Shown here one piece after another: positions 1,720 through 45,727 of a stretch of 54,731 nt of DNA. Numbering within the stretch: the stretch's first letter is position 1; the number at the start of each line of letters is the position of its first letter. Source of the stretch: Vitrella brassicaformis CCMP3155 (taxonomy: Eukaryota > Protista > Chromerida). A model generated the notes under the pieces. That model was not told the DNA's origin. It ran no database searches and was given only the letters and a program-made list of their open reading frames with translations. The position numbers were made by a program, and so were the translations under genes. The stretch covers positions 1 through 54,731 of the forward strand of contig CDMY01000544.1 of assembly GCA_001179505.1 (NCBI GenBank), in the 5' to 3' direction.

Positions 1720-4700
1720 TCAGAGCTTCGCATGGCTGGGTCTGTCTGCCCCCCTCCTGAGAATGCGCTGCTCCTCTAAGTAGGTGGTGATGAACAGCGG
1801 GCACTCGCGAAGCGTCACTAAATCCGCCACCAGATCGCCCGCCTCGTCCGCACTGCTGCTAATCGTGCTGGGGGTGGAGGTGGTGGTGCCATCACCGCCC
1901 TCCTGAGGATGCCCCTCAGCCGCATTGAGGTCACACACCACCTCGCGAATCAACTCTCTGCACACGCACAACACACACACAGAGAGATCAGCCATTCCAT
2001 TGGCAGGCGCGTGTGTGGGGGGGTGTTGGTGTGAGAGACATACCTGACGAGCGGTGCGGTGACTCTGTCTGCAGCAGCTGCCTTGTGTCGCTTGTGAGTG
2101 ACGACGGACAGGGGCGCGCGGGAGTGGCTGTCGGCGTCAGGGACGGCAGCGGGGGGCGACTCGAAAGGCACGCCGTGGCGGATCTGCTGCCAGATCTGAC
2201 GGACAGAGGCACACACACACACACATCGGTCGTCGTGGGTGCGTCCACGGTGTGGAGGGGTCGGGGGCCTGGTGGTACCTGTGCCCGTGAGATTTCAGCA
2301 GTGGCGGAGTCTTCTACCTTGCCGTTCATAATGAGGTGGCCCCGCCCCTCCAGCCAGCCCTTGACGTAGCGCACACACACCTACACACACACACACAGCA
2401 GACCAGACACGTGTAACGTGACGGCCGTCTCTTCCTGGCTCACTGACCTCTATGTTGGTGCGGAGGCTATCGAGAGAGACGTCACTCTCTGCACACATAC
2501 AAACAGAGAGTGAGAGAGAGGGAGAGCGGATGGGACCTTCTGTGTGCCTGTTGTAATTCACGCCAGCGTGCCTGTGGGTATCTGCAGCAGGTCGTGCGCC
2601 GTGACGGTGTCGGCATCTCGAGCAGCGTAAGACGACAGCTGATTCGGACACCTGGGTAACACACCACACCACACACAGACAAATGATTCCCTGACGTGGC
2701 GTTGAGAGGCATCCCACCGACCCTACCCCTTTGCGAAGTGTTTGGCGAATGCGTCCTGGACGGGCTGCACCAGCGACAGGTCGTAGACGAGCGCACCGTC
2801 CGCACCCGCCAAGGCGTCACCCTCCTTGGCTGACACACACGCACTCACCTGCAGAGCCAACACACCCAACACACACACAGACAGCAGACAGGTAGGTAAT
2901 CACTTTGTCCAAGGGCCTTGAGGCATGTGTGTGGGTGGTTTGTGTGTACCAGCAGTTGTTTGTCGTGTGTGGTGAGTGAGCCGTCGTCGACGCCAGCGAA
3001 CATGCCGCCAGTGGCGGGGGCGCCGCGCCTGAGCGAGTCAGGACGGAGGGGACCATGGATGCCAGTGTGCGTGTGATGTGTGTGTACCTGTGGCAGGTGG
3101 CTATGACCTTCCTCCGGTAGCTCCTCATGAAGTGACGATCCATCGACACATAACTACACACACAGATGCACACACAGACACACACTGATGCCGTCCGTGT
3201 GCGCCCTTCTCCAACACGATGGTGCCCACCTTTACCCACCGGTTTCTATCAGGGAAAATTTTGCGTCTGTCGTGGCCCATGCGTGTGATGAATGAGGCCG
3301 CGTAGTCCCACATGCCGCAGTTGAGGCCGGCCGAGTGGTTCCGCAGCTCCCACAGCATCTCGTCCATCTCAAAGGCTGCCGGCAGACTCTCAATCAACAC
3401 ACACGCTGAACCAAACAATACACACACAGAACGCTCATCGCCCTCTCTCTCTCCCTCTCTCTGTATGTGTGTGTCGTTTCCGTGCACCAATCGCACCTTT
3501 GATTGTGTTTGCGGGAATGTCGAGGGCCTCCTCTGTCCAAGTGAAGATCCTGTCCCACAGAGCGGCCTCACTCGCACTCTCCAGCTGCAGCACACAGACA
3601 CAGAAACGAGACGAACCACCCACTTGTCAAATGAGTGCATCCCTCTGCTTGTTTGGTGTGCATGTGTGTGGTGCCTTTGAGAGGTAGAGGAATGGTCCCC
3701 TGCTGAGTTCCGCCAGGTGTCGGCCGGACGAGAAGACAAACATGCCAAAGTCGAACAAGGCGCCGCTAACGCGACGACCTGCACACACATATACACAGGG
3801 AGGGAGAGAGAGAGATGTCACCGATGTCAGTCATTGGCTCGGCATGGCGCTGACCGTTGACCATGACATTTGCCTCGATCATGTTCCATGCACGAGGGCT
3901 GCAACACAGCACAACACAGCACAACACAGCACAACACAGCACAACACAGCACAACCAATCAGCGGCGTGTCCATCCAGACAACAATGTGTTTGACAACGA
4001 CGGACTCACCGGACCATCATGACGGTGGAGGTGCCGTCTGTGGCCGCACGTGTGTGGCCCTCCTGGTCGCCCGGCAGCTGACCCCTGGCCGCGTTGGCCA
4101 CATTGAGGTGACCGATCAGCACATTCCGCCACGACGGACAGAAGCCGTCGTCGAAGTCAACCTGCACACACACACGCACACACACAGACGCTGATTGTTT
4201 CAGGCTCGACGACTGTCATGCGAATGAGTGGCTGTGACTGACCTGCACGCCCTGTGCGCCGGAGAGCATGGCATTTCGCAGTAGAGGTCCATTGGAGGGG
4301 TCGACGTCGCCGATGTCCACTCGGCGGTCGAGCAATGCCGCTGGCAGGGGGGCTATCCTCCAATCAGACGACCTGCACACATCACAGACAGACAGACAGA
4401 CAGGCAGACAGACATGTGGGTCAGTGTGTCGTGATCTGGAGGCTGACCTGGTTTGTGCGGTTGCAGCGCTAAATTCTGAAGGACCACGGCCCTCCTGATA
4501 GGCCTGACAATCACACACACGCAATCACAAGCAACAGAATCACACACGCCGATGCCGCCCGACGACGGATGCATCATGACTCGCTGTATGTTGGCTGACC
4601 GTGTGTCTGTTGGCTCTGTCGCGGTACAGCTGGTTGACGTCATCTTCAAATGTGCTCACCAGCCGCCGCAGGAAGTCCAGTGCGCCCTCCGTCAGCACGG

Positions 4701-4773
4701 TGGTGTACGCCTTGTGCGCCTGAGGGTCGCGAGAGGCAGAGGGAAACTCCAGCACCTCTATCCATGAATCCAT
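1720..4773 (-). CDS. MLS: Malate synthase (glyoxylate cycle), multi-exon, C-terminal PTS1 AKL
   Basis: Exons encode [85 protein letters not shown] and [21 protein letters not shown]. The gene ends ..SHAKL-TGA at 1720-1722. Confidence 0.95.
3901..3956 (+). repeat. Intronic 10-bp minisatellite (ACAACACAGC)x~5
   Basis: Direct tandem repeat read in a malate synthase intron. Confidence 0.9.
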
Positions 4774-4775
4774 TC

Positions 4776-4852
4776 CTGTCCGTGCCGAGAAGGAAGCACG
4801 AAGAAAGAAGGGTTTGGGTGACGGGTTTCTTACCCTTGAACCCAAACCCTTC
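4776..4852 (-). promoter_or_regulatory. Conserved leader-exon/5'-splice-site motif plus 58-nt 5'-UTR intron of malate synthase
   Basis: The minus strand reads AAGGGTTTGGGTTCAAGG|GTAAGAAACCC..pyrimidine tract..GACAG|GAATG. A perfect 13-bp inverted repeat lies at 4807-4819/4840-4852. Confidence 0.65.
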
Positions 4853-5140
4853 CGCCTCACACAACAAATTCCTGGGGCAATTCTTCAAAACAGGTACACG
4901 GCTTAGGTGGAGGTGAGGTGATAAGGCAGGCCACAACAGACTGAAAACCGAGAAAGATCTCTCTTGTCTGTTGCAGATCTCGGTGCAGATCTCGCTTCGT
5001 GAGCCAACAAACAGCAAAGGCGGCAGACGGTCTTCCACAGGTGAGGGACACACAGGACACGCAGAGACGATTTCGGCTTTTTTCACGAGTGCATGCATCC
5101 GCTGATCTGATCCTTCACGCAGAGCGTCGTTACGAGGGCA

Positions 5141-6769
5141 ATGGACAGTGACAGCCTGACTGAGCATGCGATTCTTTCGCACTTTCAAGTGCCGACCGCC
5201 ACCCTCTGCGAGAGCATCCAGCCGCTGCAGCAAGAGATCACCGCCACACGCGAGAGCATCAACCAGCTGAAGCAGAAACACGGCATTGCTGAGGGATCGG
5301 CGGCCTCGTCTGTCGACGTGCTGCTGCTGAATGTGGGCGGCAGTGAGATGAGCGTCAAACGCAAGCACATGACGGAGGGAGAGGGCGTCGAGGGCACTCT
5401 GCTGGCCGTGCTCTTCTCTGGCAAGCTCGACAACCGATTCATCAAAGACGACAAGCAGCGTGTCTTCCTTGATGTGGACGCGGAGGCCTTCAGGATTGTC
5501 CACAAGACCATCTTGGGGCGAGTACCATCCAGCAGGCGACACGCGAGGGCGAGCGGGATGGGTTCTCGAACTCTCATCTGCTCACCGGGGCGGAGAGGCG
5601 TCAACACAAAGGCAAACAGATGTGTTGACGCCTCTCATACACACGTGGCTTGCGTGTACACCCCTTCCCGATCTGTTTGTAGGTTTGAACGATTTTTGAA
5701 TCAAGAAGTTGCTGTCGCCTGTCCAAGAAGGGCAACTTGCCAGGAAGGGCTACCGCCCGCAGCCGGCGGTCGGGCGGCCGCCATCAGTGACGGCGGGGGG
5801 CATCCCCACCACGGCCAGCGGACTCGTCACGGCCCTCAATGACGTGCTCAAGGCCTACCACGACAAGAAGAGCAAGCTCGAGGGAGAGCTCCGCGCAGAG
5901 AAGATCCGATATGAGCAACACGAGGCAGAAATACAGGTGAGTGACAGGCAGCCCACGAGCTTCATCTGGATGTCGTCTGTTTTAGCAGGCCGCTAGCTCC
6001 TTCCTGGCACCCATGGATGGCAGTGACCTCATCCGCTCTGTCGATGTCTGCGGAGAAGTCATCTCGACGTGTCAATCAACTATCGACTCCATCCCGGAGG
6101 AGATGGCCCTCAAAAGACGCAACACGGAATCACTGTGAGCAAACGCAGCACAATGGCGATATGCACTTAGGCGCTTCACATGTGTGTGCCCATTGTTCAG
6201 GTGGGGCAGCTCAGTGCACGAAGGCGTGCACGTCCCGCCCGACCACATGAGCCGACTCATCGACCACCACCGCCGCAAACGGCATGGCGCGTCCGACGAT
6301 GAGGCGCGTGTGCCGCTGCAGCTGACCGACCCGCGGGCGCAGAGGGCATTCGATGTCAACGCGGCCATGTACGGCATCGTCAGGAATGACACCCCAGCGG
6401 CACTCCAGGCACAGCAGCCCAGGTACACACATGAGAAGCAGCACTGGAAGGCCGGCCTTGCAATTTGTCGTCTCTGTCGCTGTATAGTAATGATGGCTTC
6501 ATCCTGATGCTGCCAACTGGTGTGCGCTACCGCACCGTCACGGCGGGCACCGGCAGAACACCGCGTGTCGACTCGACGGTGAGGTACGACTTGGCGGCCG
6601 AGACGTATTCTACGATTACCGTGGGGAGGTGGGGAGTATGTGTGAGGTATCCAGGTGGGTGCGTGGGGCGTCGCTGTCGTTGCGTGTGGGGGAAATCAGG
6701 CACATCATACTCCCTCATGCAGTCGAGGGCGCCAAGTACATTCAATTGCAGCTGATCAGCATTTTATAG
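5141..6769 (+). pseudogene. BTB/POZ(KCTD T1-like)-coiled coil-BTB-like-FKBP-like fusion gene, disabled
   Basis: VLLLNVGGSEMSVKRKHMT..LLAVLFSG..RVFLDVD is BTB/T1-like and LPTGVRYRTVTAGTG..LRVGEIRHIILP..LQLISIL is FKBP-like. Relative to the paralog at 51006 it has a 1-nt deletion at ~5515, TGG>TGA at 5697-5699 and an 8-bp duplication GTGGGGAG at 6621-6636. Confidence 0.8.
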
Positions 6770-7733
6770 GATATCTGTCTGTCGAGGAGGGAATGTGTTT
6801 TGTGTTTGTTTGGTTTTGGTTTTTGTTTTGTTTGGCACATACAAGATTGGTGTTGGCTCTAGCCTGTCGATTCATCGCAGAACGTCACTCTGTGTATGAG
6901 ATGTGCTTGGGCTGTATGTGGGAGGCAGCACAGAGATGCAGCCAACGTACGACACGCCTTTTTGTACGGTGAATAGTATTGCACACGATGGATGGCTGGT
7001 GTTGGTGAATTGATGGATGGATGGATGGTTGGGTGTGCACGCAAACAAACCCTCTCTCTTTGCAGTGGATGCCAAACCTCTTCAATCCCACAAGTCTCAT
7101 CAAGACGCACCATTCATTGATGCAAGGCTACATGCAGAAGCAGGAAGGCAGGCACATATGTACATCGACCGACCAGTCCGTCACTCAGCCACAGACACGC
7201 CTTGGACACGAACACCCAGAGAAAGTCGAGTCGTCAGAGAAAAACTCCGGCAACCGAAACCCAGACCACCCACCCTCACCATCCACTTCCAGAGCACACG
7301 AAGGAAGAGGCTATCATCCAACCAGGCAGGACAGCCCCGGTTGCACACCCACACCCACCCTATAGGATGAAAACGACGCAATATCTACAAAACCATAGGT
7401 GTCGATCGACTGTCGACAGGCGAATACGATACACACATGGACGAATCGCATCTGTGGGACCTTGTTCATTCATTCGTTCTTCGTGTGGTGTGAGTGCCTT
7501 GGATTGGTGGAGCTCAATCATGAGCAATACTCACTGATCGCTGATACTCACTGATTCATGATCACCACTTGCAGCCATCCATCCATTCAATCACCCAGCA
7601 CCCACCCATCGACATCACTCACTCACTCACTCACTCAAAACAAGCAACAAGCAATGGTGTGTCTCACCTATAGCTAACAGTCCTATCGAACTCATCTACA
7701 CACCCCGAAGTGACGATTTCGATTTCATTTTCG

Positions 7734-8317
7734 TCACCAACAGGTTCGGTTCGTCATCAAACTGTGCAGGTAGTCACAGATCTGCTGCTGCCGCCTGACA
7801 GCCAGAAGGATAGAGAGATACCAGAGGCCGGCCAGTACGATCATGATGGTGGCTGTGGCGAGGCAGCGGCGGGCCCACTTCTGCCTCTGCGACCCCTTCT
7901 TAGCGTCCAGGTTGAGGCAGAAAGCCAAGCAGCCAATGATGGGGAAGAATATCGCCAACACGCACGACACCTGATGTACAAGATCGCCAACACACACACA
8001 CACAACACGCCTTGCAAGTTGGGTGGGGGGTTGCGTCGTTGCTGCCTGCCTGCCTGCCTGCCCGTCCATCGGTCCATCGATCTCACCTTCGCGCAGAGCG
8101 TCCACGACTTGTCATCTTCGTCTTGTTGTTGCGGCTCCGGCACCACCACCTCCGGCACGGTGATCACATGTGCAATGGAGGGCGCGCCGTACGCCGGCGG
8201 AGTAGCGCTGTCCGCGGATATCGATGGCCACTCGCAGCTGCCGGGCTGAGACTGAGGCGGGGCGAGAGAAGGCTGGTCAACCGAGGGATAGGCCGGCATG
8301 ATTGAGGTGGCTGACAT
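7734..8317 (-). CDS. Pro-rich, Cys-containing two-helix membrane protein, CD225/dispanin-like (copy 1)
   Basis: Two exons. The N-terminus is Pro-rich (MSATSIMPAYPSV..), followed by hydrophobic VSCVLAIFFPIIGCLAFCL, a basic linker NLDAKKGSQRQKWARR and hydrophobic CLATATIMIVLAGLWYLSILLAV. The family label rests on topology only. Confidence 0.65.
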
Positions 8318-8429
8318 TGGCTGCTCTGCTGCAGTGCAAGGTTTGTCTGCAAGGTCGAGAGGCGTTGGATGTCAGTGATGCACCAAGGCAGAGGAACGAA
8401 GATCTGCTTGGTCGAATGGCGATGTCCGT

Positions 8430-8517
8430 CTAGTGTGCGACACAAGGGCGAGGAGACCGGGGACGGAGAGATAAGCGAGCAGGTGACTGGGTTTCTTACC
8501 CTGAAACCCAAACCCTT
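8430..8517 (-). promoter_or_regulatory. Leader-exon/donor motif plus 70-nt 5'-UTR intron
   Basis: AAGGGTTTGGGTTTCAGG|GTAAGAAACCC...CACTAG|ACGGAC. Confidence 0.65.
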
Positions 8518-8699
8518 GTCCACGAGTGGAGGCATGTCCCTTTCTACATGCGAGAGTGGATACTGCCGAACCTCTTCAATCCCACAAGTCTCATCAAGAC
8601 GCACCATTCTTTGATGCAAGGCTACATGCAGAAGCAGGAAGGCAGGCACATATGGTCCTCTGCAAAGGCTCTATGTACATCGACCGACCAGTCCGTCAC

Positions 8700-9395
8700 T
8701 CAGTCAGTCACAAACATGGTCTGCGTGTTCATGGGAGATCTGTTTCGGGGGTCAAACATGGGGTTTTCTGTCAAGTGGTCGTAGTTAAAGTTCCTGTCAA
8801 CCCACACCTTCCCGAGATACATGCTGCCAGCCAGCAAAATCATCAAGATGGCTGTGTAGAGGCAACAGAGGGCCCACTTCTGCCTCTGCGACCCCTTCTT
8901 AGCGTTCAGGTTGAGGCAGAAAGCGACGAAGCCAATGATGGGCAAGAATATCGCCAACACGCACGTCACCTGATATGGATCAACACACACATACACACAC
9001 ACACACACAACAACACGCCTTGCAAGTCGGGTGCGCGGTTGCTTCGTTGCTGCCTGCCTCCCTGTCCATCGGTCTATCGGTCTCACCTGTTGGCAGAGCG
9101 TCCACGACTTGTCATCTTCGTCTTCTTGTTGCGGCTCCGGCACGAAGCCCAAAGGGATCACATGTGCACCATCCACTAACTGCGGCTGCTCATACTGCGG
9201 CTGATCACCACTTGACGGCGTCCCGGCTGTGTTTGGGGTCGCCGGCGGCTGGCCGACAGCAGCCGGCATCGTCTGGGGTGCGCCGTACGCCGGCGGAGTA
9301 GCGCTGTTGGCGGATATCGATGGCCACTCGCAGTTGCCGGGCTGAGACTGAGGCGGGGCGAGAGAAGGCTGGTCAACCGAGGGATAGGCCGGCAT
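8700..9395 (-). CDS. CD225/dispanin-like membrane protein (copy 2)
   Basis: Paralog of 7734-8317 with the same intron. The first ATG of copy 1 is CTG here, so the start is probably MPAYP at 9395 (alternative ATG at 9434). The C-terminus differs. Confidence 0.65.
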   Translation of the reverse strand: MPAYPSVDQPSLAPPQSQPGNCEWPSISANSATPPAYGAPQTMPAAVGQPPATPNTAGTPSSGDQPQYEQPQLVDGAHVIPLGFVPEPQQEDEDDKSWTLCQQVRPIDRWTGRQAATKQPRTRLARRVVVCVCVYVCVDPYQVTCVLAIFLPIIGFVAFCLNLNAKKGSQRQKWALCCLYTAILMILLAGSMYLGKVWVDRNFNYDHLTENPMFDPRNRSPMNTQTMFVTD

Positions 9396-9524
9396 GATCG
9401 AGGTGGCTGACAGTGGCTGGCTGCTGCAGTGCAAGGTTTGTCTGCAAGGTCAAGAGGCGTTGGATGTCAGTGATGCACCAAGGCAGAGGGACGAAGATCT
9501 GCTTGGTCGAATGGCGATGTCCGT

Positions 9525-9621
9525 CTGAGAGTGCGGACACGAAGGGCGGGAGACCGGACGGTGAGGGAGGAGAGAGCCATTGCGGGAAACGCGGGTTTCT
9601 TACCCTGAAACCCAAACCCTT
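9525..9621 (-). promoter_or_regulatory. Leader-exon/donor motif plus 79-nt 5'-UTR intron
   Basis: AAGGGTTTGGGTTTCAGG|GTAAGAAACCC...CTCTCAG|ACGGAC. The acceptor position is the same as in copy 1. Confidence 0.65.
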
Positions 9622-9624
9622 CAC

Positions 9625-12155
9625 ATGAACCCCAGCTGGCGGTGGTGTTGCAGATCTGCGAGAAGTTCAACAATGCGGACATTCCCTCGATCACCCAGGC
9701 TGACCAGACTCATCCCTCGGAGACGTCCGTTGCCTCGTCGCATCTCGACCAAGCCTCATCCAAGAATCCATCGCCAGCCTCGCTATCTCTGTCTGGCTCT
9801 CGGCTCACCGTTCGTCATCTTGCTGCCATCAGGGAGGAGATTTGAGCCCATTCCCAGGAGATCACCGGCCAAATGCGAGTCTGCAGCAGCTGCTGTGGTG
9901 ATCGATGCATCGAGCCTGCTGGACGAGGAGCGGCGTCTATTGGGTTTATGGGAGGACGTGTGGTACGCGTTGCGGCTGGTGGTCAAGGCGGTGCAGATGG
10001 CGTGTCTGGCGTCGCCGCTGGTGGTGCTGGTGCCGCTGGCCCGGCTGTCTGTGTGGGTGGAGGATGTGTCGTGGCGGTACGTGTACTGGGCGGTGGAGCG
10101 GTGCGGCCCGTGCTACATCAAGTTCATGCAGTGGGCCGCCACACGGCCTGACCTCTTCCCTGCCGACATCTGCCAGAGATGCGCTCGGTGAGATGACAGC
10201 TGGGAAAAGAGGAAGACACACACATGCATCCGTGTGTGTGTGTGTGTGTGTATATGTGTGTGCGTCAGGTTTCACTGTTCGGTGGCGCCTCACTCGTTGC
10301 GTGCGACCGAGTATGTGCTGACCCATGCCTTTGGACCCTCATGGCGGGAATCCCTCGAAATCGTCGACAAAGAGTCAGCGAGCGAGATGATGATGAACAC
10401 GAGCAGACAAATGGAGGAATGACACTGCGTTGTGTGTTTGCCCAGGCCGATCGGCTCAGGGTGTGTCGCGCAAGTGAGTCGACACTCGTCAGCGCGCTTT
10501 AAGCCACTCTGCTGCTGACTGTGACGACGTGTGTGTGGTGGTGTTTGGTGGGTGTGTGTGTGTTAGTAGGTGTACCGAGGTCGTCTGCGGCAGCAGCACT
10601 CGAGTGACAGTGGCAGTGACGGGTGGGTCGACGTGGCCGTCAAGGTGGCGCACCCGGGGATCGCAGAGCGGATACAACTCGGTGAGAGGGAGGCCATTGA
10701 CATCGGACGTCGGATGGATGGATGGATGGCTGTGGGTGGTGCGTGATGGTCAGATCTGCAGCTGATGCGTGCGGGTGCGTCCCTGCTGGAGGTCTTCCCG
10801 AGCATCCGATGGCTCGCACTCAGAGACAGGTTTACACCCACACACCCACACCCACACCCACACCCACACCCATGGTTCAGCCTTCCTGTCTGTCTGTCTG
10901 TCTGTCGTGCAGTGTGGAGCAGTTTGCGTCGGTGATGAGTCGGCAGGCCGACCTGAGCGAGGAGGCCGAGCACATCACACGATTCAGACAGCTCTTTCCA
11001 CAAAGCTCACACGACAGAGGTGCTCACAACACACACCTGCACACACATCGTCACTTCTGCATCTGTGTGTGTGCGCGCGTGTGTGTGTTGGCATTGGTAA
11101 GACACTGTGGTGTTCCCCGAGGTGGTTGACGGCCGTTGGGTCCACCCGGAGGTGCTCGTCGAGCGGTTCGAGGACGGCACACGCATCGGCGAGTGGATCG
11201 ATCAACAGAACCAACACGACGACACTGCCGTCCGTAGAAGAACCACACACACCCACGCCCCTTATCTATGAAGCCCTCATCTCTCTCTCTCTCTCTGTTT
11301 CTTGCGCATGATGCAGTTGAGGAAACGAGTAGCCAACCTGGGCATATCAGCTTTCCTCAAGGTGAGTGACATCACTCACTCACACCACCGCCCCAATTCT
11401 CTCTCCCCCATGCATCCACACGTGCCTATCGATGGATCAGATGTTGTTCATCGACAACTTCGTCCACGCCGACCTGCACCCCGGCAACCTCCTCATCCGC
11501 ATCGAAGACCGGCCAGACGGCAAGTCGCCGCCCAGGATAGTGCTGGTCTTCCTCGACTGCGGCCTCGTCACGGAGCTGCAGCCGCGGGACCGACGCAACT
11601 TCGTGTCGCTCTTCAGAGCACTCGCCAAGGGCGACGGGCAGCTGGCCGGTCAGACTGGTGGAGAGAGAGGAGAGAGAGGGGTGAGAGGCAGATGTGGATG
11701 TGCTCTGTGCGCGCGCGTGTGTGTGTGGGTGGGTGGGTTATGCCAGGTCGGCTGATACTGCGTGAGGCGAAGCAGCAGCGGTGCCCCGACCCACAGGCCT
11801 TCGTCGACGAAGTCGACACACTCCTTAACACTTTCCTCAAGGTGCGCAAACCACTGTCCGTCCACCTCCCCCACTCGCCACCGTCACTCTCCCTCTGTGT
11901 GTGTGGTGCGTGTTATACTGTCTGCAGCAAGGTGTGCAGCTGAGCCAGGTCCGTGCGGGCGAGATCCTCTCCCGGCTGCTGACTTTGGCCTCCCGCCACC
12001 GTGTGCAGCTGGAGGGCAACTTCGTGTCTGTGTGTCTGGCGGTGATGATCCTGGAGGGGCTGGGGCGGCAGCTGGATCCGCACATCGACCTGCTCAAGGC
12101 CGCTGCGCCGTACGTCATGAGAGCTGCACTCACACTGGGCATCAGGGACCAATAA
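9625..12155 (+). CDS. ADCK2: ABC1/UbiB atypical kinase, ADCK2/Cqd1-like, probably mitochondrial
   Basis: Motifs are CGPCYIKFMQWAATRPDLF, VYRG..VAVKVAHP, DLSEEA, VHADLHPGN, FLDCGL and LEGNF..ILEGLGRQLDP. The N-terminus is Arg-rich and acid-free (start 9625 or 9673). Confidence 0.92.
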
Positions 12156-43317: not shown

Positions 43318-45727
43318 ATGAGGATCATGGAGAGAGCGACCGAGATGGTGTTCAGTTTGATTGACAGCATACGGCAGCACCAGCTGGCCCACAGGACGGT
43401 GTGTTACCTCGTGATATCCCTCTGGTTCTTCCGGGCCATCGACAACCACAACCTGTACTTCCTCAACACTTTCCCCGAGGGGCCAAGGAACATCCTCACC
43501 CGCACCACCACCGCCAGTAGCCTGTGAGCCCCACCGCCCGTGACCCCCACATGGGCGCTTCCAGCTCTCTGTTGTGCCGTTGCTGCTGCCAACAAGACAC
43601 AACAGAGGGGCGCATGTTGGAGGCGGGCAGAGTCTACGACGAGAACCAGATTGTGGTGGGCGACTCGGAGAGGGGCGGCTCCGGCGACGCCAGCAGCAGC
43701 CGATCGCGAGACATCGACGTGGCCTCCCAACACACGCAGAGAAGAGACTGGTTCGCCGCCCCGTTCCACCAGTGCATGATGGCCGACTCGCCCAAAGCAT
43801 CGCAGCAGAGGAAAAGTAGGCAGGCCAGCCAGCCGTCAGACAGGCCGGGGAGGCCGTCCGTGAGAACCAGGCCGAGAGAAGAGTCGAGGGCAGATGACGC
43901 CGCATCGTCCGCACCACCCAGCGAAGAGTCGCAGCAGCCGCAGGCGGCCCCTTCTCTGCCTTCGAGGCTGATGAATCTGCGGAAGGATGTGTCGAGTGCG
44001 TCTGTTGGGACCAAGAAGACGGCGAGTGGGAAGTTGTATGCGATGCGGGTCAAGTTGAAGGACGGCAACGAGTACACTGGAGAGGTCGACAAGAGAAACC
44101 GGCCACACGGGACGGGCAAACTCACATACAAGGACGGGTGAGGATGCGAACAGGGGCCAGTGGTTGCATGTGGTATTGCGTATTGTGTCGTGTCTCCGTT
44201 TTCTGTTCGTTCAGGAGTGTGTACAGCGGTGAGTTCAAAGACGGCAAGAGGCACGGATACGGCCTCATATTCTACAATGACGGCACAAGGTGAATAACAT
44301 CGCCAATCTGACCTTTCTGTCGAAATTGGTATGTCTCTGTGCGTCTGTGTGTGTACTGTGTTGTCAGGTACACGGGTCAGTTTGTGGATGACTACCGTGA
44401 GGGTGAGGGGCGCGAAGTCACACCTGACGACACCATCTACGTCGGCACATTCAGGTGGATGAACGATGGAATAGTGAACGAGAGGAAGGCACCCATTTGA
44501 CTCATGTACGTGTCTCCGTCTCTCCATTACCTGGCATACAGGGGCGGTTTGTGTGAGGGCCGCGGTGTCCTGACCACACGGGAAGGCCTCCATTATGAAG
44601 GCAAGCGCACGGTTGTTTTGGCTTCGCACGCTGCATCCATCAGTCCATCCGTGGGTATGTGTGTGCAGGTGACTTTGCTGACGGCGATGCGAGCGGCTTC
44701 GGCCGCCTCACATACCCCGACGGACGCACCTACGAGGGGGAGGTCAGCCCAGCCGCACACACGACACACCGATGGAGACACAATGAATGAATGAATGAAT
44801 GAATGCCGCACGCAGCACAGTCATTTGTGTGTCCGTGTGTCTGTTCAGTTCCTGGCTGGCTGGAGTCACGGCAAGGGCATCATGACCTTCAAGAATGGCG
44901 TTAAGTACGAGGGACAAATCGTAGACGACAAACGAGAGGGAAAGGTAAGATGATGAGCAACCGCACACACGTACGGTGGATCATCGTGTATGTGTGGGTT
45001 TCATTCACTCAGGGTTTGATGACTTGGCCCGACGGCAGCTCTTACTTCGGCTACTGGAAGGACGGCAAACAAGAGGGTAAACAGACAGATGACACAGCAA
45101 ATGGACGTTTTTCATAGGAATCCATTGCCGAGCTTTGTGTGTGTCTTTACGTATTCAGGCAAGGGCGTGTGGACGTCGGCCGACAAGACCAAGAAATACG
45201 GGCTATTCAAAGATGGAAAGGTCAGCAACCGCATCCCCACACGCATTGGATTGAGAGAGAAATGCGCGTGGATTGATTGGCTCGTTTGTTCAGCCTGTGC
45301 GTTGGATGCGTCCGCCTCCGAAGGGCGGCAAGAGCAGACTGTCACCGGAGGCCGGCTCGCAGCGAAGCGACTCGGGCCTTCTCTCATCAGGCTCATTCCA
45401 ACAAATGCCAGACACCGTAAGTGTGCGATGTGAGACATGCATCGGATGCACAGACAGACAGACAGACAGACAGAGACACCCACTCAACACGCCTACAGGC
45501 TTCCATTCTGTCTGCAGCAGGCGACCCCCTCTCCGCTTCACCAGTCCCCCCCGGCCAGCCGTCAGTCGAGTGTCCCCCAGCAGCCTGCAAGGAAGCTGCC
45601 CAAGCCGCCAGGCACCCCATTCCCACCGCAGAGAGCCGGCGAGAAGAAAAATGTCATGATCAGGGCGCCGGAGGACGCCAAGAAGGGGCAGAGACCGGCA
45701 GGGGGAGGGGGAGGGGCCAGGAGATGA
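43318..45727 (+). CDS. MORN-repeat protein with N-terminal hydrophobic segment
   Basis: About 8 repeats of YxGxFxDGxxxGxG (YTGEVDKRNRPHGTG, YSGEFKDGKRHGYG, YEGQIVDDKREGKG, YFGYWKDGKQEGKG) and a Pro/Ser-rich tail. Confidence 0.9.

Follow-up and report, generated by a model that had tools for sequence, protein, structure and literature searches.

Telomere-repeat-like sites between divergent genes of Vitrella brassicaformis as probable promoter elements

Introduction

Chromerid algae are free-living photosynthetic relatives of the malaria and Toxoplasma parasites, and to our knowledge their promoter signals are almost unknown. In fungi, telomere-type repeats serve as promoter sites that are read by Myb-type telomere-binding factors (Tbf1, Rap1 and Teb1 of S. 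pombe), and in plants the telo-box AAACCCTA is bound by TRB Myb proteins. The telo-boxes of Arabidopsis are short interstitial copies of the telomere repeat in gene promoters, and TRB proteins have been described as plant-specific (PMC10167121); the protein that would read such sites in Vitrella must therefore be a different one. A literature search returned no account of promoter words in Vitrella that resemble the telomere.

The window analysed here is a stretch of 54,731 nucleotides of V. brassicaformis CCMP3155 (contig CDMY01000544.1), in which a preliminary description had noted three minus-strand copies of a 29-nt motif in front of protein-coding genes. Like plant telo-boxes, the Vitrella sites to which this motif belongs correspond to roughly a single unit of the TTTAGGG-type telomere repeat of the organism itself, are over-represented and lie close to promoters; unlike plant telo-boxes, their units stand in phased clusters of two or three, the middle one being degenerate (GGGTTnC), and very often form a head-to-head palindrome. 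The apparent reuse of telomere-repeat-like words as promoter elements would parallel the Tbf1, Rap1 and Teb1 sites of fungi, from which the Vitrella sites differ in repeat sequence, architecture and lineage. Spliced-leader (SL) RNA genes of dinoflagellates and Perkinsus likewise combine a short exon with a GT donor that follows it close to a small stem, whereas the Vitrella copies are few, are joined in cis to protein genes and have neither the gene unit with an Sm site nor a match to a known SL family.

Results

All three positions of the motif were reproduced (Table 1), and the copies in front of two tandem small membrane-protein genes (D1 and D2) were identical by alignment (29/29). In the window, GGGTAAGAAACCC occurred three times with 0 mismatches, compared with a mean of 0.47 in shuffled sequence at up to 2 mismatches, and GGGTTTGGGTT gave five matches with at most one mismatch, compared with 0.74 expected. 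The identity of malate synthase was confirmed by Pfam (PF01274); the label "dispanin-like", which had been given to the small membrane-protein gene, received no confirmation from Pfam. The malate synthase copy comprises a pair of telomere-like units, a third one of the form GGGTAAG and an inverted AAACCC unit, and 49 nt separate its end from the ATG at 4773-4771. The motif had been reported from nowhere else in the window, which holds for the full motif but not for an inverted partial copy nearby (4809-4820) that forms a perfect 12-bp inverted repeat with the first 12 nt of the malate synthase copy.

Table 1. Positions of motif copies and associated features in the window
Feature	Position	Strand	Remarks
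Motif copy, malate synthase	4823..4851	-	Two 1-nt indels relative to the other two copies
Motif copy, small membrane-protein gene D1	8489..8517	-	5' edge of downstream tandem copy; ATG 8299-8297
Motif copy, upstream tandem copy D2	9593..9621	-	ATG 9395-9393; plus-strand ABC1-kinase gene on other side
Inverted partner ACCCAAACCCTT of first 12 nt of malate synthase copy	4809..4820	-	Plus-strand match 4810-4820
Three AGATCT palindromes	4955..4992		Intergenic, malate synthase to plus-strand ORF at 5141
Candidate 58-nt 5'-UTR intron, malate synthase	4833->4776	-	GTAAG..AG; AG 2 nt before ATG 4773-4771
Candidate 70-nt 5'-UTR intron, D1	8499->8430	-	GTAAG..AG read from sequence
Candidate 79-nt 5'-UTR intron, D2	9603->9525	-	GTAAG..AG read from sequence
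First exon, divergent plus-strand gene	5141..5520	+	Weak resemblance to KCTD-type BTB (E about 0.1)
Probable first exon, ABC1-kinase gene	9670..10188	+	ABC1 kinase domain in later exon (11366-11752); divergent from D2

The telomere of V. brassicaformis was found as (TTTAGGG)n at the end of contig C20, and the earlier comparison of the supposed exon with degenerate TTTAGGG repeats was borne out, its units being copies of this telomere repeat. A scan of the 72.7-Mb genome gave 55 sites for AGGGTTTGGGTT (8 for the control), 88 for GGGTTNCAGGGTT (control 5), 37 for GGGTTNCAGGGTA (control 1), 337 for GGGTNNNAAACCC (control 39) and 73 for the perfect palindrome AGGGTTT-N0-2-AAACCCT (control 0). The motif is a member of a dispersed, over-represented family of telomere-like heptamers, whose consensus AGGGTTTGGGTTnCAGGGTTT often has an inverted AAACCC after it. 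In a position matrix made from 33 of 55 sites (AGGGTTTGGGTTnCAGGGTtt), positions 20 and 21 were T in 17/33 and 16/33 sites and A in 8/33 and 8/33 sites, respectively; GGGTAAG, the form that the third unit takes in the window copies, is in the minority within the family. Conservation across sites extended to unit phasing, the junction CAGGGTT and a gap of 0-2 nt within the inverted pair, and the units themselves differed freely from site to site, as in a family of binding sites and unlike copies of one element.

Sites of this composition might also be structural DNA (i.e., tracts prone to G-quadruplex or cruciform formation) or scars of telomere-repeat insertion, in either case without a sequence-specific reader. 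The three GGG tracts on one strand of each copy (four in the 9593 copy) and the frequency of perfect palindromes agree with such an origin. Most sites, however, have just three G-tracts, and the conserved phasing, junction and spacing, together with a consistent placement between gene starts, are easier to reconcile with a selected binding site than with scars. An explanation from DNA structure or scarring is accordingly regarded as very improbable.

The position of family members relative to genes was evident from the window as well as from other contigs. The malate synthase copy lies in a divergent intergenic region of 367 bp, measured from the malate synthase ATG, because the plus-strand gene on the other side begins at 5141. 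The AGATCT palindromes of this region represent a companion word of the family, 29 of 33 occurrences of which were within -400 to +200 of the motif. A 21-mer of the motif was present in four copies in 72.7 Mb, three of them within 4.8 kb and none in tandem arrays, and each copy preceded a protein-coding ATG by 32-200 nt; the fourth (contig C347) is flanked by the ATG of a prefoldin-like ORF at a distance of 32 nt and, on its other side, by a divergent ORF. A PRPP-synthetase ORF begins 43 nt downstream of one family site. A metaplot of 32 sites, obtained with a noisy, home-made codon model that used no annotation and scored 10% of the window as coding on both strands, showed almost no coding sequence from -250 to +100, with coding on the sense strand downstream and on the antisense strand upstream, while a simple test of placement based on ORF length was without power. 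Family members were found in short non-coding gaps with genes pointing outward on both sides. Since the end of the motif is only 30-58 nt from the ATG in several genes, the motif may be transcribed, which leaves room for a role in RNA. The flanking genes, a small sample, included those for malate synthase, ABC1 kinase and PRPP synthetase, one with a weak match to an E2 enzyme that stayed below threshold, the prefoldin-like ORF and a small basic ribosomal-like ORF; the bias toward translation-machinery genes that is typical of plant telo-boxes was not seen among these few genes, too small a sample for such a comparison. Judged from sequence, the family sites are most likely binding sites in promoters.

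The 29-mer is probably one local version of a composite cis-regulatory element that derives its units from the TTTAGGG telomere repeat. In such an element, direct AGGGTT(T) units, two or three in number and spaced 7 nt apart, commonly precede an inverted AAACCC(T), which makes a palindrome of half-sites with the last of them. Its reader may be a sequence-specific factor for double-stranded telomere repeats, of the Myb or ApiAP2 type and possibly dimeric, which would act on promoters as at plant telo-boxes and the Tbf1/Teb1 sites of fungi. In the window copies, AGGGTAAG replaces AGGGTTT as the third unit and coincides with a consensus 5' splice site, and the "hairpin" would be a palindrome of half-sites in DNA rather than an RNA device.

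Folding of the copies as RNA gave -33.8 kcal/mol (z = -5.4) for malate synthase, whereas the two paralogue copies folded no better than shuffled sequence (z = -1.8 and -0.06). These results reverse the order of strength implied by the perfect pairing formerly ascribed to the D1 and D2 copies and the imperfect pairing ascribed to malate synthase, the hairpin of which is strongest because the inverted partial copy completes the 12-bp repeat. The motif had been likened to the common leader of an SL RNA, and the short G/T-rich exon, the GTAAG donor and the small stem-loop do give it a superficial likeness to a gene for an RNA of this kind, the mini-exon of which would be given in trans to other mRNAs. 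Against this stand the four copies of the 21-mer in the whole genome, each before a protein-coding ATG and none in an array, and the two stem-loops that did not exceed shuffles. Rfam gave no match over 4400-10000, with only a sub-threshold chance match elsewhere, and no report of trans-splicing in Vitrella was found in a literature search. An SL RNA gene is hardly credible at all under these circumstances and was rejected on the basis of a copy number of four, placement in cis and the lack of a match to a known SL family; membership in the SL RNA genes of dinoflagellates and Perkinsus was ruled out on the same grounds.

Candidate 5'-UTR introns were evident in all three copies, with GT..AG spans of exactly the lengths previously claimed (58, 70 and 79 nt), including the AG 2 nt from the malate synthase ATG. 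Each has GT..AG borders, a consensus donor and a pyrimidine tract, and the sequences are compatible with splicing. As a cis-encoded leader, the motif would be transcribed from a start just upstream to give a mini-exon of approximately 18 nt, from which GTAAG would be spliced to the AG 58, 70 or 79 nt further on, and a patch of leader plus donor would have passed between neighbouring genes through recombination. Such a leader can coexist with a promoter function. Consistent with splicing, GG/GTAAGA makes a good donor, and D1 and D2 are about 60% identical, with indels, in the interior of the candidate intron, as opposed to 29/29 for the motif and at least 97% for the 150 nt that follow the AG. 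Copies on other contigs fit as well: in C409 and C1036, GGGTAAGAAACCC is followed by intron-like tracts that end in CAG and the removal of which would delete upstream ATGs, and in C453 a candidate intron of 57 nt results from CTGAC and an AG that lies just ahead of the ATG.

Across the genome, however, the donor-bearing form of the motif was not enriched (19 sites versus 42 in the control), GTAAG was a minor spacer variant (8/337 of GGGTNNNAAACCC sites) and downstream pyrimidine content did not differ between the donor form (0.53) and the TTT form (0.51). Moreover, the C347 copy has GTAAG 25 nt before the ATG without a usable acceptor, the malate synthase donor would be buried in the hairpin of -33.8 kcal/mol and a first exon of 18 nt would be unusually short. 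In a distantly related paralogue of the small membrane-protein gene, the same promoter is kept but the motif reads AGGGTTTAAACCCT, with neither donor nor acceptor, and yet the GTGTCGCAC box, which sits inside the supposed intron, is conserved. A GTGTCGCACA box (8443-8434) within the 70-nt candidate intron is also conserved in distant paralogues, and the paralogue promoter at C269:82619 carries AGGGTTTGGGTTTCAGGGTTTAAACCCT between two divergent family members. A leader exon encoded in cis is considered possible, though doubtful. If transcription begins upstream of the motif, splicing at GTAAG may well occur as a by-product of the promoter element. It seems unlikely, but conceivable, that in some Vitrella promoters the last unit of the palindromic telomere-like site has become a consensus 5' splice site, in a dual-use patch recombined between unrelated neighbours; the 29-nt element would then be the binding site of a bidirectional promoter and would also hold the junction at which the first exon meets a 5'-UTR intron.

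The D1 and D2 copies belong to a tandem duplication, as proposed in the preliminary description; they would have come with the duplicated gene, the motif itself being the 5' boundary of the duplication. Around the malate synthase copy the flanking sequence is unrelated, as also proposed, except for six further bases (GTCACC) in common with the 8489 copy. With GTCACC included, the malate synthase and D1 copies shared 35/38 aligned positions, and similarity ended after 36 nt without terminal inverted repeats or target-site duplications. Local copying is suggested by the rare optional details that the malate synthase and paralogue copies have in common, and the former would most likely derive from short-tract copying (gene conversion or patch recombination) from 3.7 kb away, not from transposition.

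The same 29-36 nt ahead of unrelated genes, and the location of some other family members within dispersed repeats, could also reflect a very small MITE- or introner-like mobile element that inserts a promoter, an exon and a donor. The abrupt end of similarity without inverted repeats or target-site duplications, the concentration of three of only four 21-mer copies within 4.8 kb and the free variation of units from site to site make this scarcely plausible. A mobile element was rejected since conserved ends are lacking, the donor is a minor variant (8/337) and the paralogue promoter has no donor or acceptor. Of the telo-box-like promoter or leader module once supposed to have spread as a tiny mobile element with its own exon and donor, the likeness to telo-boxes, the over-representation and the position between divergent genes stand, while mobility does not.

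Discussion

A tempting interpretation of the motif as a spliced or mobile leader is replaced here by a more ordinary one. As a probable promoter element, the phased, palindromic, telo-box-like sequence would offer a concrete starting point in the search for the protein by which telomere repeats are read at chromerid genes, and a point of comparison with plant TRB/telo-box and fungal Tbf1 systems, possibly as a convergent reuse of telomere repeats. It may also supply practical promoter parts for an alga that is still poorly tractable.

Since some family members lie inside dispersed repeats, a promoter function need not be assumed for every copy.

Motif copies and the telomere-like family

Re-reading of the minus strand between 4500 and 9900 bore out the presence of three motif copies (Table), one ahead of a malate synthase gene and one ahead of each of D1 and D2, the tandem copies of a small membrane-protein gene. 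The D1 and D2 copies agreed at all 29 nt and were set apart from the malate synthase copy by two single-base indels. Since GGGTAAGAAACCC occurred exactly three times in the window, as compared with a shuffle mean of 0.47 even at up to two mismatches, chance does not account for this recurrence. The GT..AG spans, which the preliminary description took for 5'-UTR introns, measured exactly 58, 70 and 79 nt, and 2 nt did separate the AG from the ATG of malate synthase. The accompanying hairpin claim, of perfect pairing in the D1 and D2 copies and imperfect pairing in the malate synthase copy, needed correcting. The GGGTTTC/GAAACCC stems of D1 and D2 were no stronger than those of shuffled sequence (RNA fold z = -1.8 and -0.06), whereas the malate synthase copy and its inverted partner formed a perfect 12-bp inverted repeat (RNA fold -33.8 kcal/mol, z = -5.4).

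The relation of these copies to a wider family was evident from a scan of the genome (72.7 Mb, 1064 contigs). Four copies of the strict 21-mer were noted, three of them in the window and the fourth on contig C347, 32 nt upstream of a prefoldin-like ATG and with a divergent ORF adjoining. As seen once the pattern was relaxed, the 21-mer is, in sequence terms, the tip of a larger telomere-like family: counts against control patterns were 55 to 8 for AGGGTTTGGGTT, 88 to 5 for GGGTTNCAGGGTT, 37 to 1 for GGGTTNCAGGGTA and 337 to 39 for GGGTNNNAAACCC, and the perfect palindrome AGGGTTT-N0-2-AAACCCT was found at 73 sites as opposed to none for the control. One AGGGTTTGGGTT match fell within a (TTTAGGG)n array that closes a contig, and this identifies TTTAGGG as the telomere repeat of the organism; this array contained one variant unit (…GGGTTGTAGGGTTTGGGTTTAGGG…).

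Sampling covered 33 of the 55 core sites and small numbers of sites from the rest of the family. When 33 non-telomeric sites were compiled into a position matrix, the result was AGGGTTTGGGTTnCAGGGTtt, which amounts to three telomere-like units phased at 7 nt, and many sites were continued by an inverted AAACCC(T). The corresponding form in the window was unit-unit-AGGGTAAG-AAACCC. Read against this matrix, the supposed donor of the window is a third telomere-like unit with TT swapped for AA, and the supposed hairpin is the ordinary half-site palindrome of the family.

A further variant, GGGTTTnnGGGGTTGCAGGGTATGAAACCC, was noted at a fixed position in two dispersed repeat families (loci L090, L092 and L095; also L091 and L094), in one of which a conserved block and a (CACAAA)n tract come after it; some family members thus spread as parts of repeats.

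Coordinates of features in the window and on other contigs (C) of the same genome; L, locus taken from that genome
Feature	Location	Strand	Remark
Motif, malate synthase copy	4823-4851	minus	
Inverted partner of malate synthase copy	4809-4820		
Malate synthase ATG	4773-4771	minus	
Motif, D1 copy	8489-8517	minus	extreme 5' edge of tandemly duplicated unit
D1 ATG	8299-8297	minus	
Motif, D2 copy	9593-9621	minus	
D2 ATG	9395-9393	minus	
GTGTCGCAC box	8434-8443; 9531-9540	minus	about 60-70 nt downstream of motif; also in L065, L066 and L067
AGATCT	4955-4992; 8400; 9495; 9652		three in 4955-4992, malate synthase intergenic region
Tandem duplication, gene and 3' flank	7070-7191 vs 8564-8706; 7815-8431 vs 8814-9526		
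Degenerate GGGTTTG	~7047-7059		far end of second duplicated unit
D2 intron	8970-9086	minus	single; 117 nt
Inverted repeat, perfect, 16 bp	5593-5636		12-nt spacer
Contig end with telomere array, L013	C20:1-1573		
Dispersed repeat with GGGTTTnnGGGGTTGCAGGGTATGAAACCC, L090	C404:68300-68700		
Dispersed repeat with GGGTTTnnGGGGTTGCAGGGTATGAAACCC, L092	C466:127320-127720		
Dispersed repeat with GGGTTTnnGGGGTTGCAGGGTATGAAACCC, L095	C528:43330-43730		
Small basic ORF, L050	C453 ~43800-43870	minus	

Placement near gene starts

At several family sites, ATG-initiated ORFs started 30-58 nt downstream, one of them encoding PRPP synthetase; Pfam searches of site-adjacent ORFs named few others, with a weak E2 match besides PRPP synthetase. 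A test of first ATGs and ORF lengths near sites was without power, random positions in this GC-rich genome scoring equally, and a codon log-odds model was therefore used, for which long ORFs with GC3/GC1 values resembling those of coding sequence served as training set and the calls of which were averaged around 32 sites. The region from -250 to +100 was almost free of coding signal, sense coding prevailed downstream (up to 0.26 versus 0.11) and antisense coding prevailed upstream (up to 0.29 versus 0.11). This pattern would be the signature of divergent gene starts and, the codon model being noisy, is taken as supportive rather than as proof.

Two other words were noted near the sites. The palindrome AGATCT clustered around the telomere-like sites both in the window and at 32 related loci, 29 of 33 occurrences falling within -400 to +200 of the motif. 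It was present 24 times in the window, where base composition would predict about 9-10, and is a candidate for a second Vitrella promoter word. Modest enrichment was seen for GCTCGCA/TGCGAGC, with seven occurrences no more than 150 nt from only 5 of 32 sites; this enrichment did not fix the transcription start. The minus-strand locus L050 carries a small basic ORF with an 18-codon, Lys/Arg-rich first exon resembling a tiny ribosomal protein; here GGGTTTCAGGGTAAG was followed 7 nt on by TGCGAGCT, 58 nt ahead of the ATG, and the L050 and C347 copies had 19 nt of a motif variant in common.

The preliminary description had offered a telo-box-like module as one reading, and this part was upheld by the telomere-like units, the over-representation of the family and its apparent placement near divergent gene starts. 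The plant telo-box would be the closest likeness, and fungal Tbf1/Teb1/Rap1 promoter sites offer a further one. A plant telo-box is a short telomere repeat lying interstitially in a promoter, where Myb proteins of the TRB type recognise it; as TRBs are described as plant-specific (PMC10167121), the protein reading the Vitrella element presumably differs. Unlike the plant telo-box, the Vitrella element is phased, multi-unit and palindromic, and belongs to another lineage. Literature searches found no account of telomere-like promoter motifs in Vitrella.

The alternative readings in the preliminary description fared less well. A spliced-leader gene was excluded in practice by copy number, by the cis position ahead of ATGs and by the lack of an Rfam match, and was further disfavoured by literature searches that found no report of trans-splicing in Vitrella. 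A mobile leader element found no backing either, as the signs of transposition (terminal repeats, target duplications, identical copies in dispersed positions) were all absent.

Paralogues and the putative splice donor

Members of the small membrane-protein family, for which the earlier label 'dispanin-like' lacked Pfam support, were found on C269, C464, C290, C315 and further contigs. The member at C269:82619 had the same upstream layout but with AGGGTTTGGGTTTCAGGGTTTAAACCCT, which lay between two divergent family members; that at C269:88197 retained the inverted half alone, and the upstream region of the C464 member was without the motif. The proposed donor and acceptor were both missing in these compared paralogues (C269, C464), yet the GTGTCGCAC box inside the supposed intron was kept, as were the approximately 190 nt from box to ATG. 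This argues that the motif was an ancestral promoter part of the paralogue family and that its splice-site-like letters are local variants. The box, present even in one distant paralogue without the telomere-like motif, may represent an initiator or an element of the core promoter, and transcription may start near it, that is, downstream of the motif.

Use of the motif GTAAG as the donor of real 5'-UTR introns in the window genes would be compatible with a promoter role, and several observations favor it: the donor is good and is followed by pyrimidine-rich tracts, the D1 and D2 copies show a diverged interior between an identical motif and a conserved continuation, and intron-like tracts that would excise upstream ATGs follow two or three other GGGTAAGAAACCC sites. 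Besides the paralogues, however, the C347 copy had no usable acceptor, the strong hairpin would bury the malate synthase donor, and pyrimidine content downstream of donor-form sites did not differ from that downstream of TTT-form sites. Nor was the donor-bearing GGGTTN1-4GGGTAAG enriched genome-wide (19 versus 42 for the control). We consider such use doubtful. Among the 337 GGGTNNNAAACCC sites, GGGTAAGAAACCC accounted for eight (three of them in the window), and GGGTATGAAACCC and GGGTAACAAACCC were each at least as common among the matches listed; by these counts, GTAAG is not a favored form of the third unit.

Origin of the window copies and adjoining genes

Comparison of D1 with D2 confirmed that their motif copies belong to a tandem duplication. 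The flanks of the malate synthase copy, described as unrelated, indeed had nothing in common with those of D1 but six bases outside the motif. These two copies, 3.7 kb apart, agreed at 35 of 38 aligned positions, the rare AAG spacer and the six bases included. In 72.7 Mb, no more than six independent GGGTAAGAAACCC loci were present. Independent origin of two copies so close and so alike is thus unlikely, and the simplest account would be that short-tract local copying, by gene conversion or patch recombination, gave malate synthase its rare variant. The tandem duplication has the telomere-like motif exactly at its 5' boundary, and its far end carries a degenerate GGGTTTG, so that recombination between telomere-like words may, speculatively, have made the duplication.

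A downstream exon matched Pfam PF01274, which confirmed the malate synthase assignment. The motif copy of this gene sits within the 367 bp that separate its minus-strand ATG from a plus-strand ORF starting at 5141, the weak KCTD-like BTB resemblance of which comes from weak PDB matches. The perfect 16-bp inverted repeat is inside the plus-strand gene adjoining malate synthase and is apparently intronic. The D2 copy lies between the D2 ATG and a plus-strand gene with an ABC1 kinase domain further along, the first exon of which was not recognisable by itself. The D2 intron is a multiple of three in length and without an in-frame stop; the whole gene is thus one 231-codon open frame from its ATG, and intron retention would yield an in-frame insertion.
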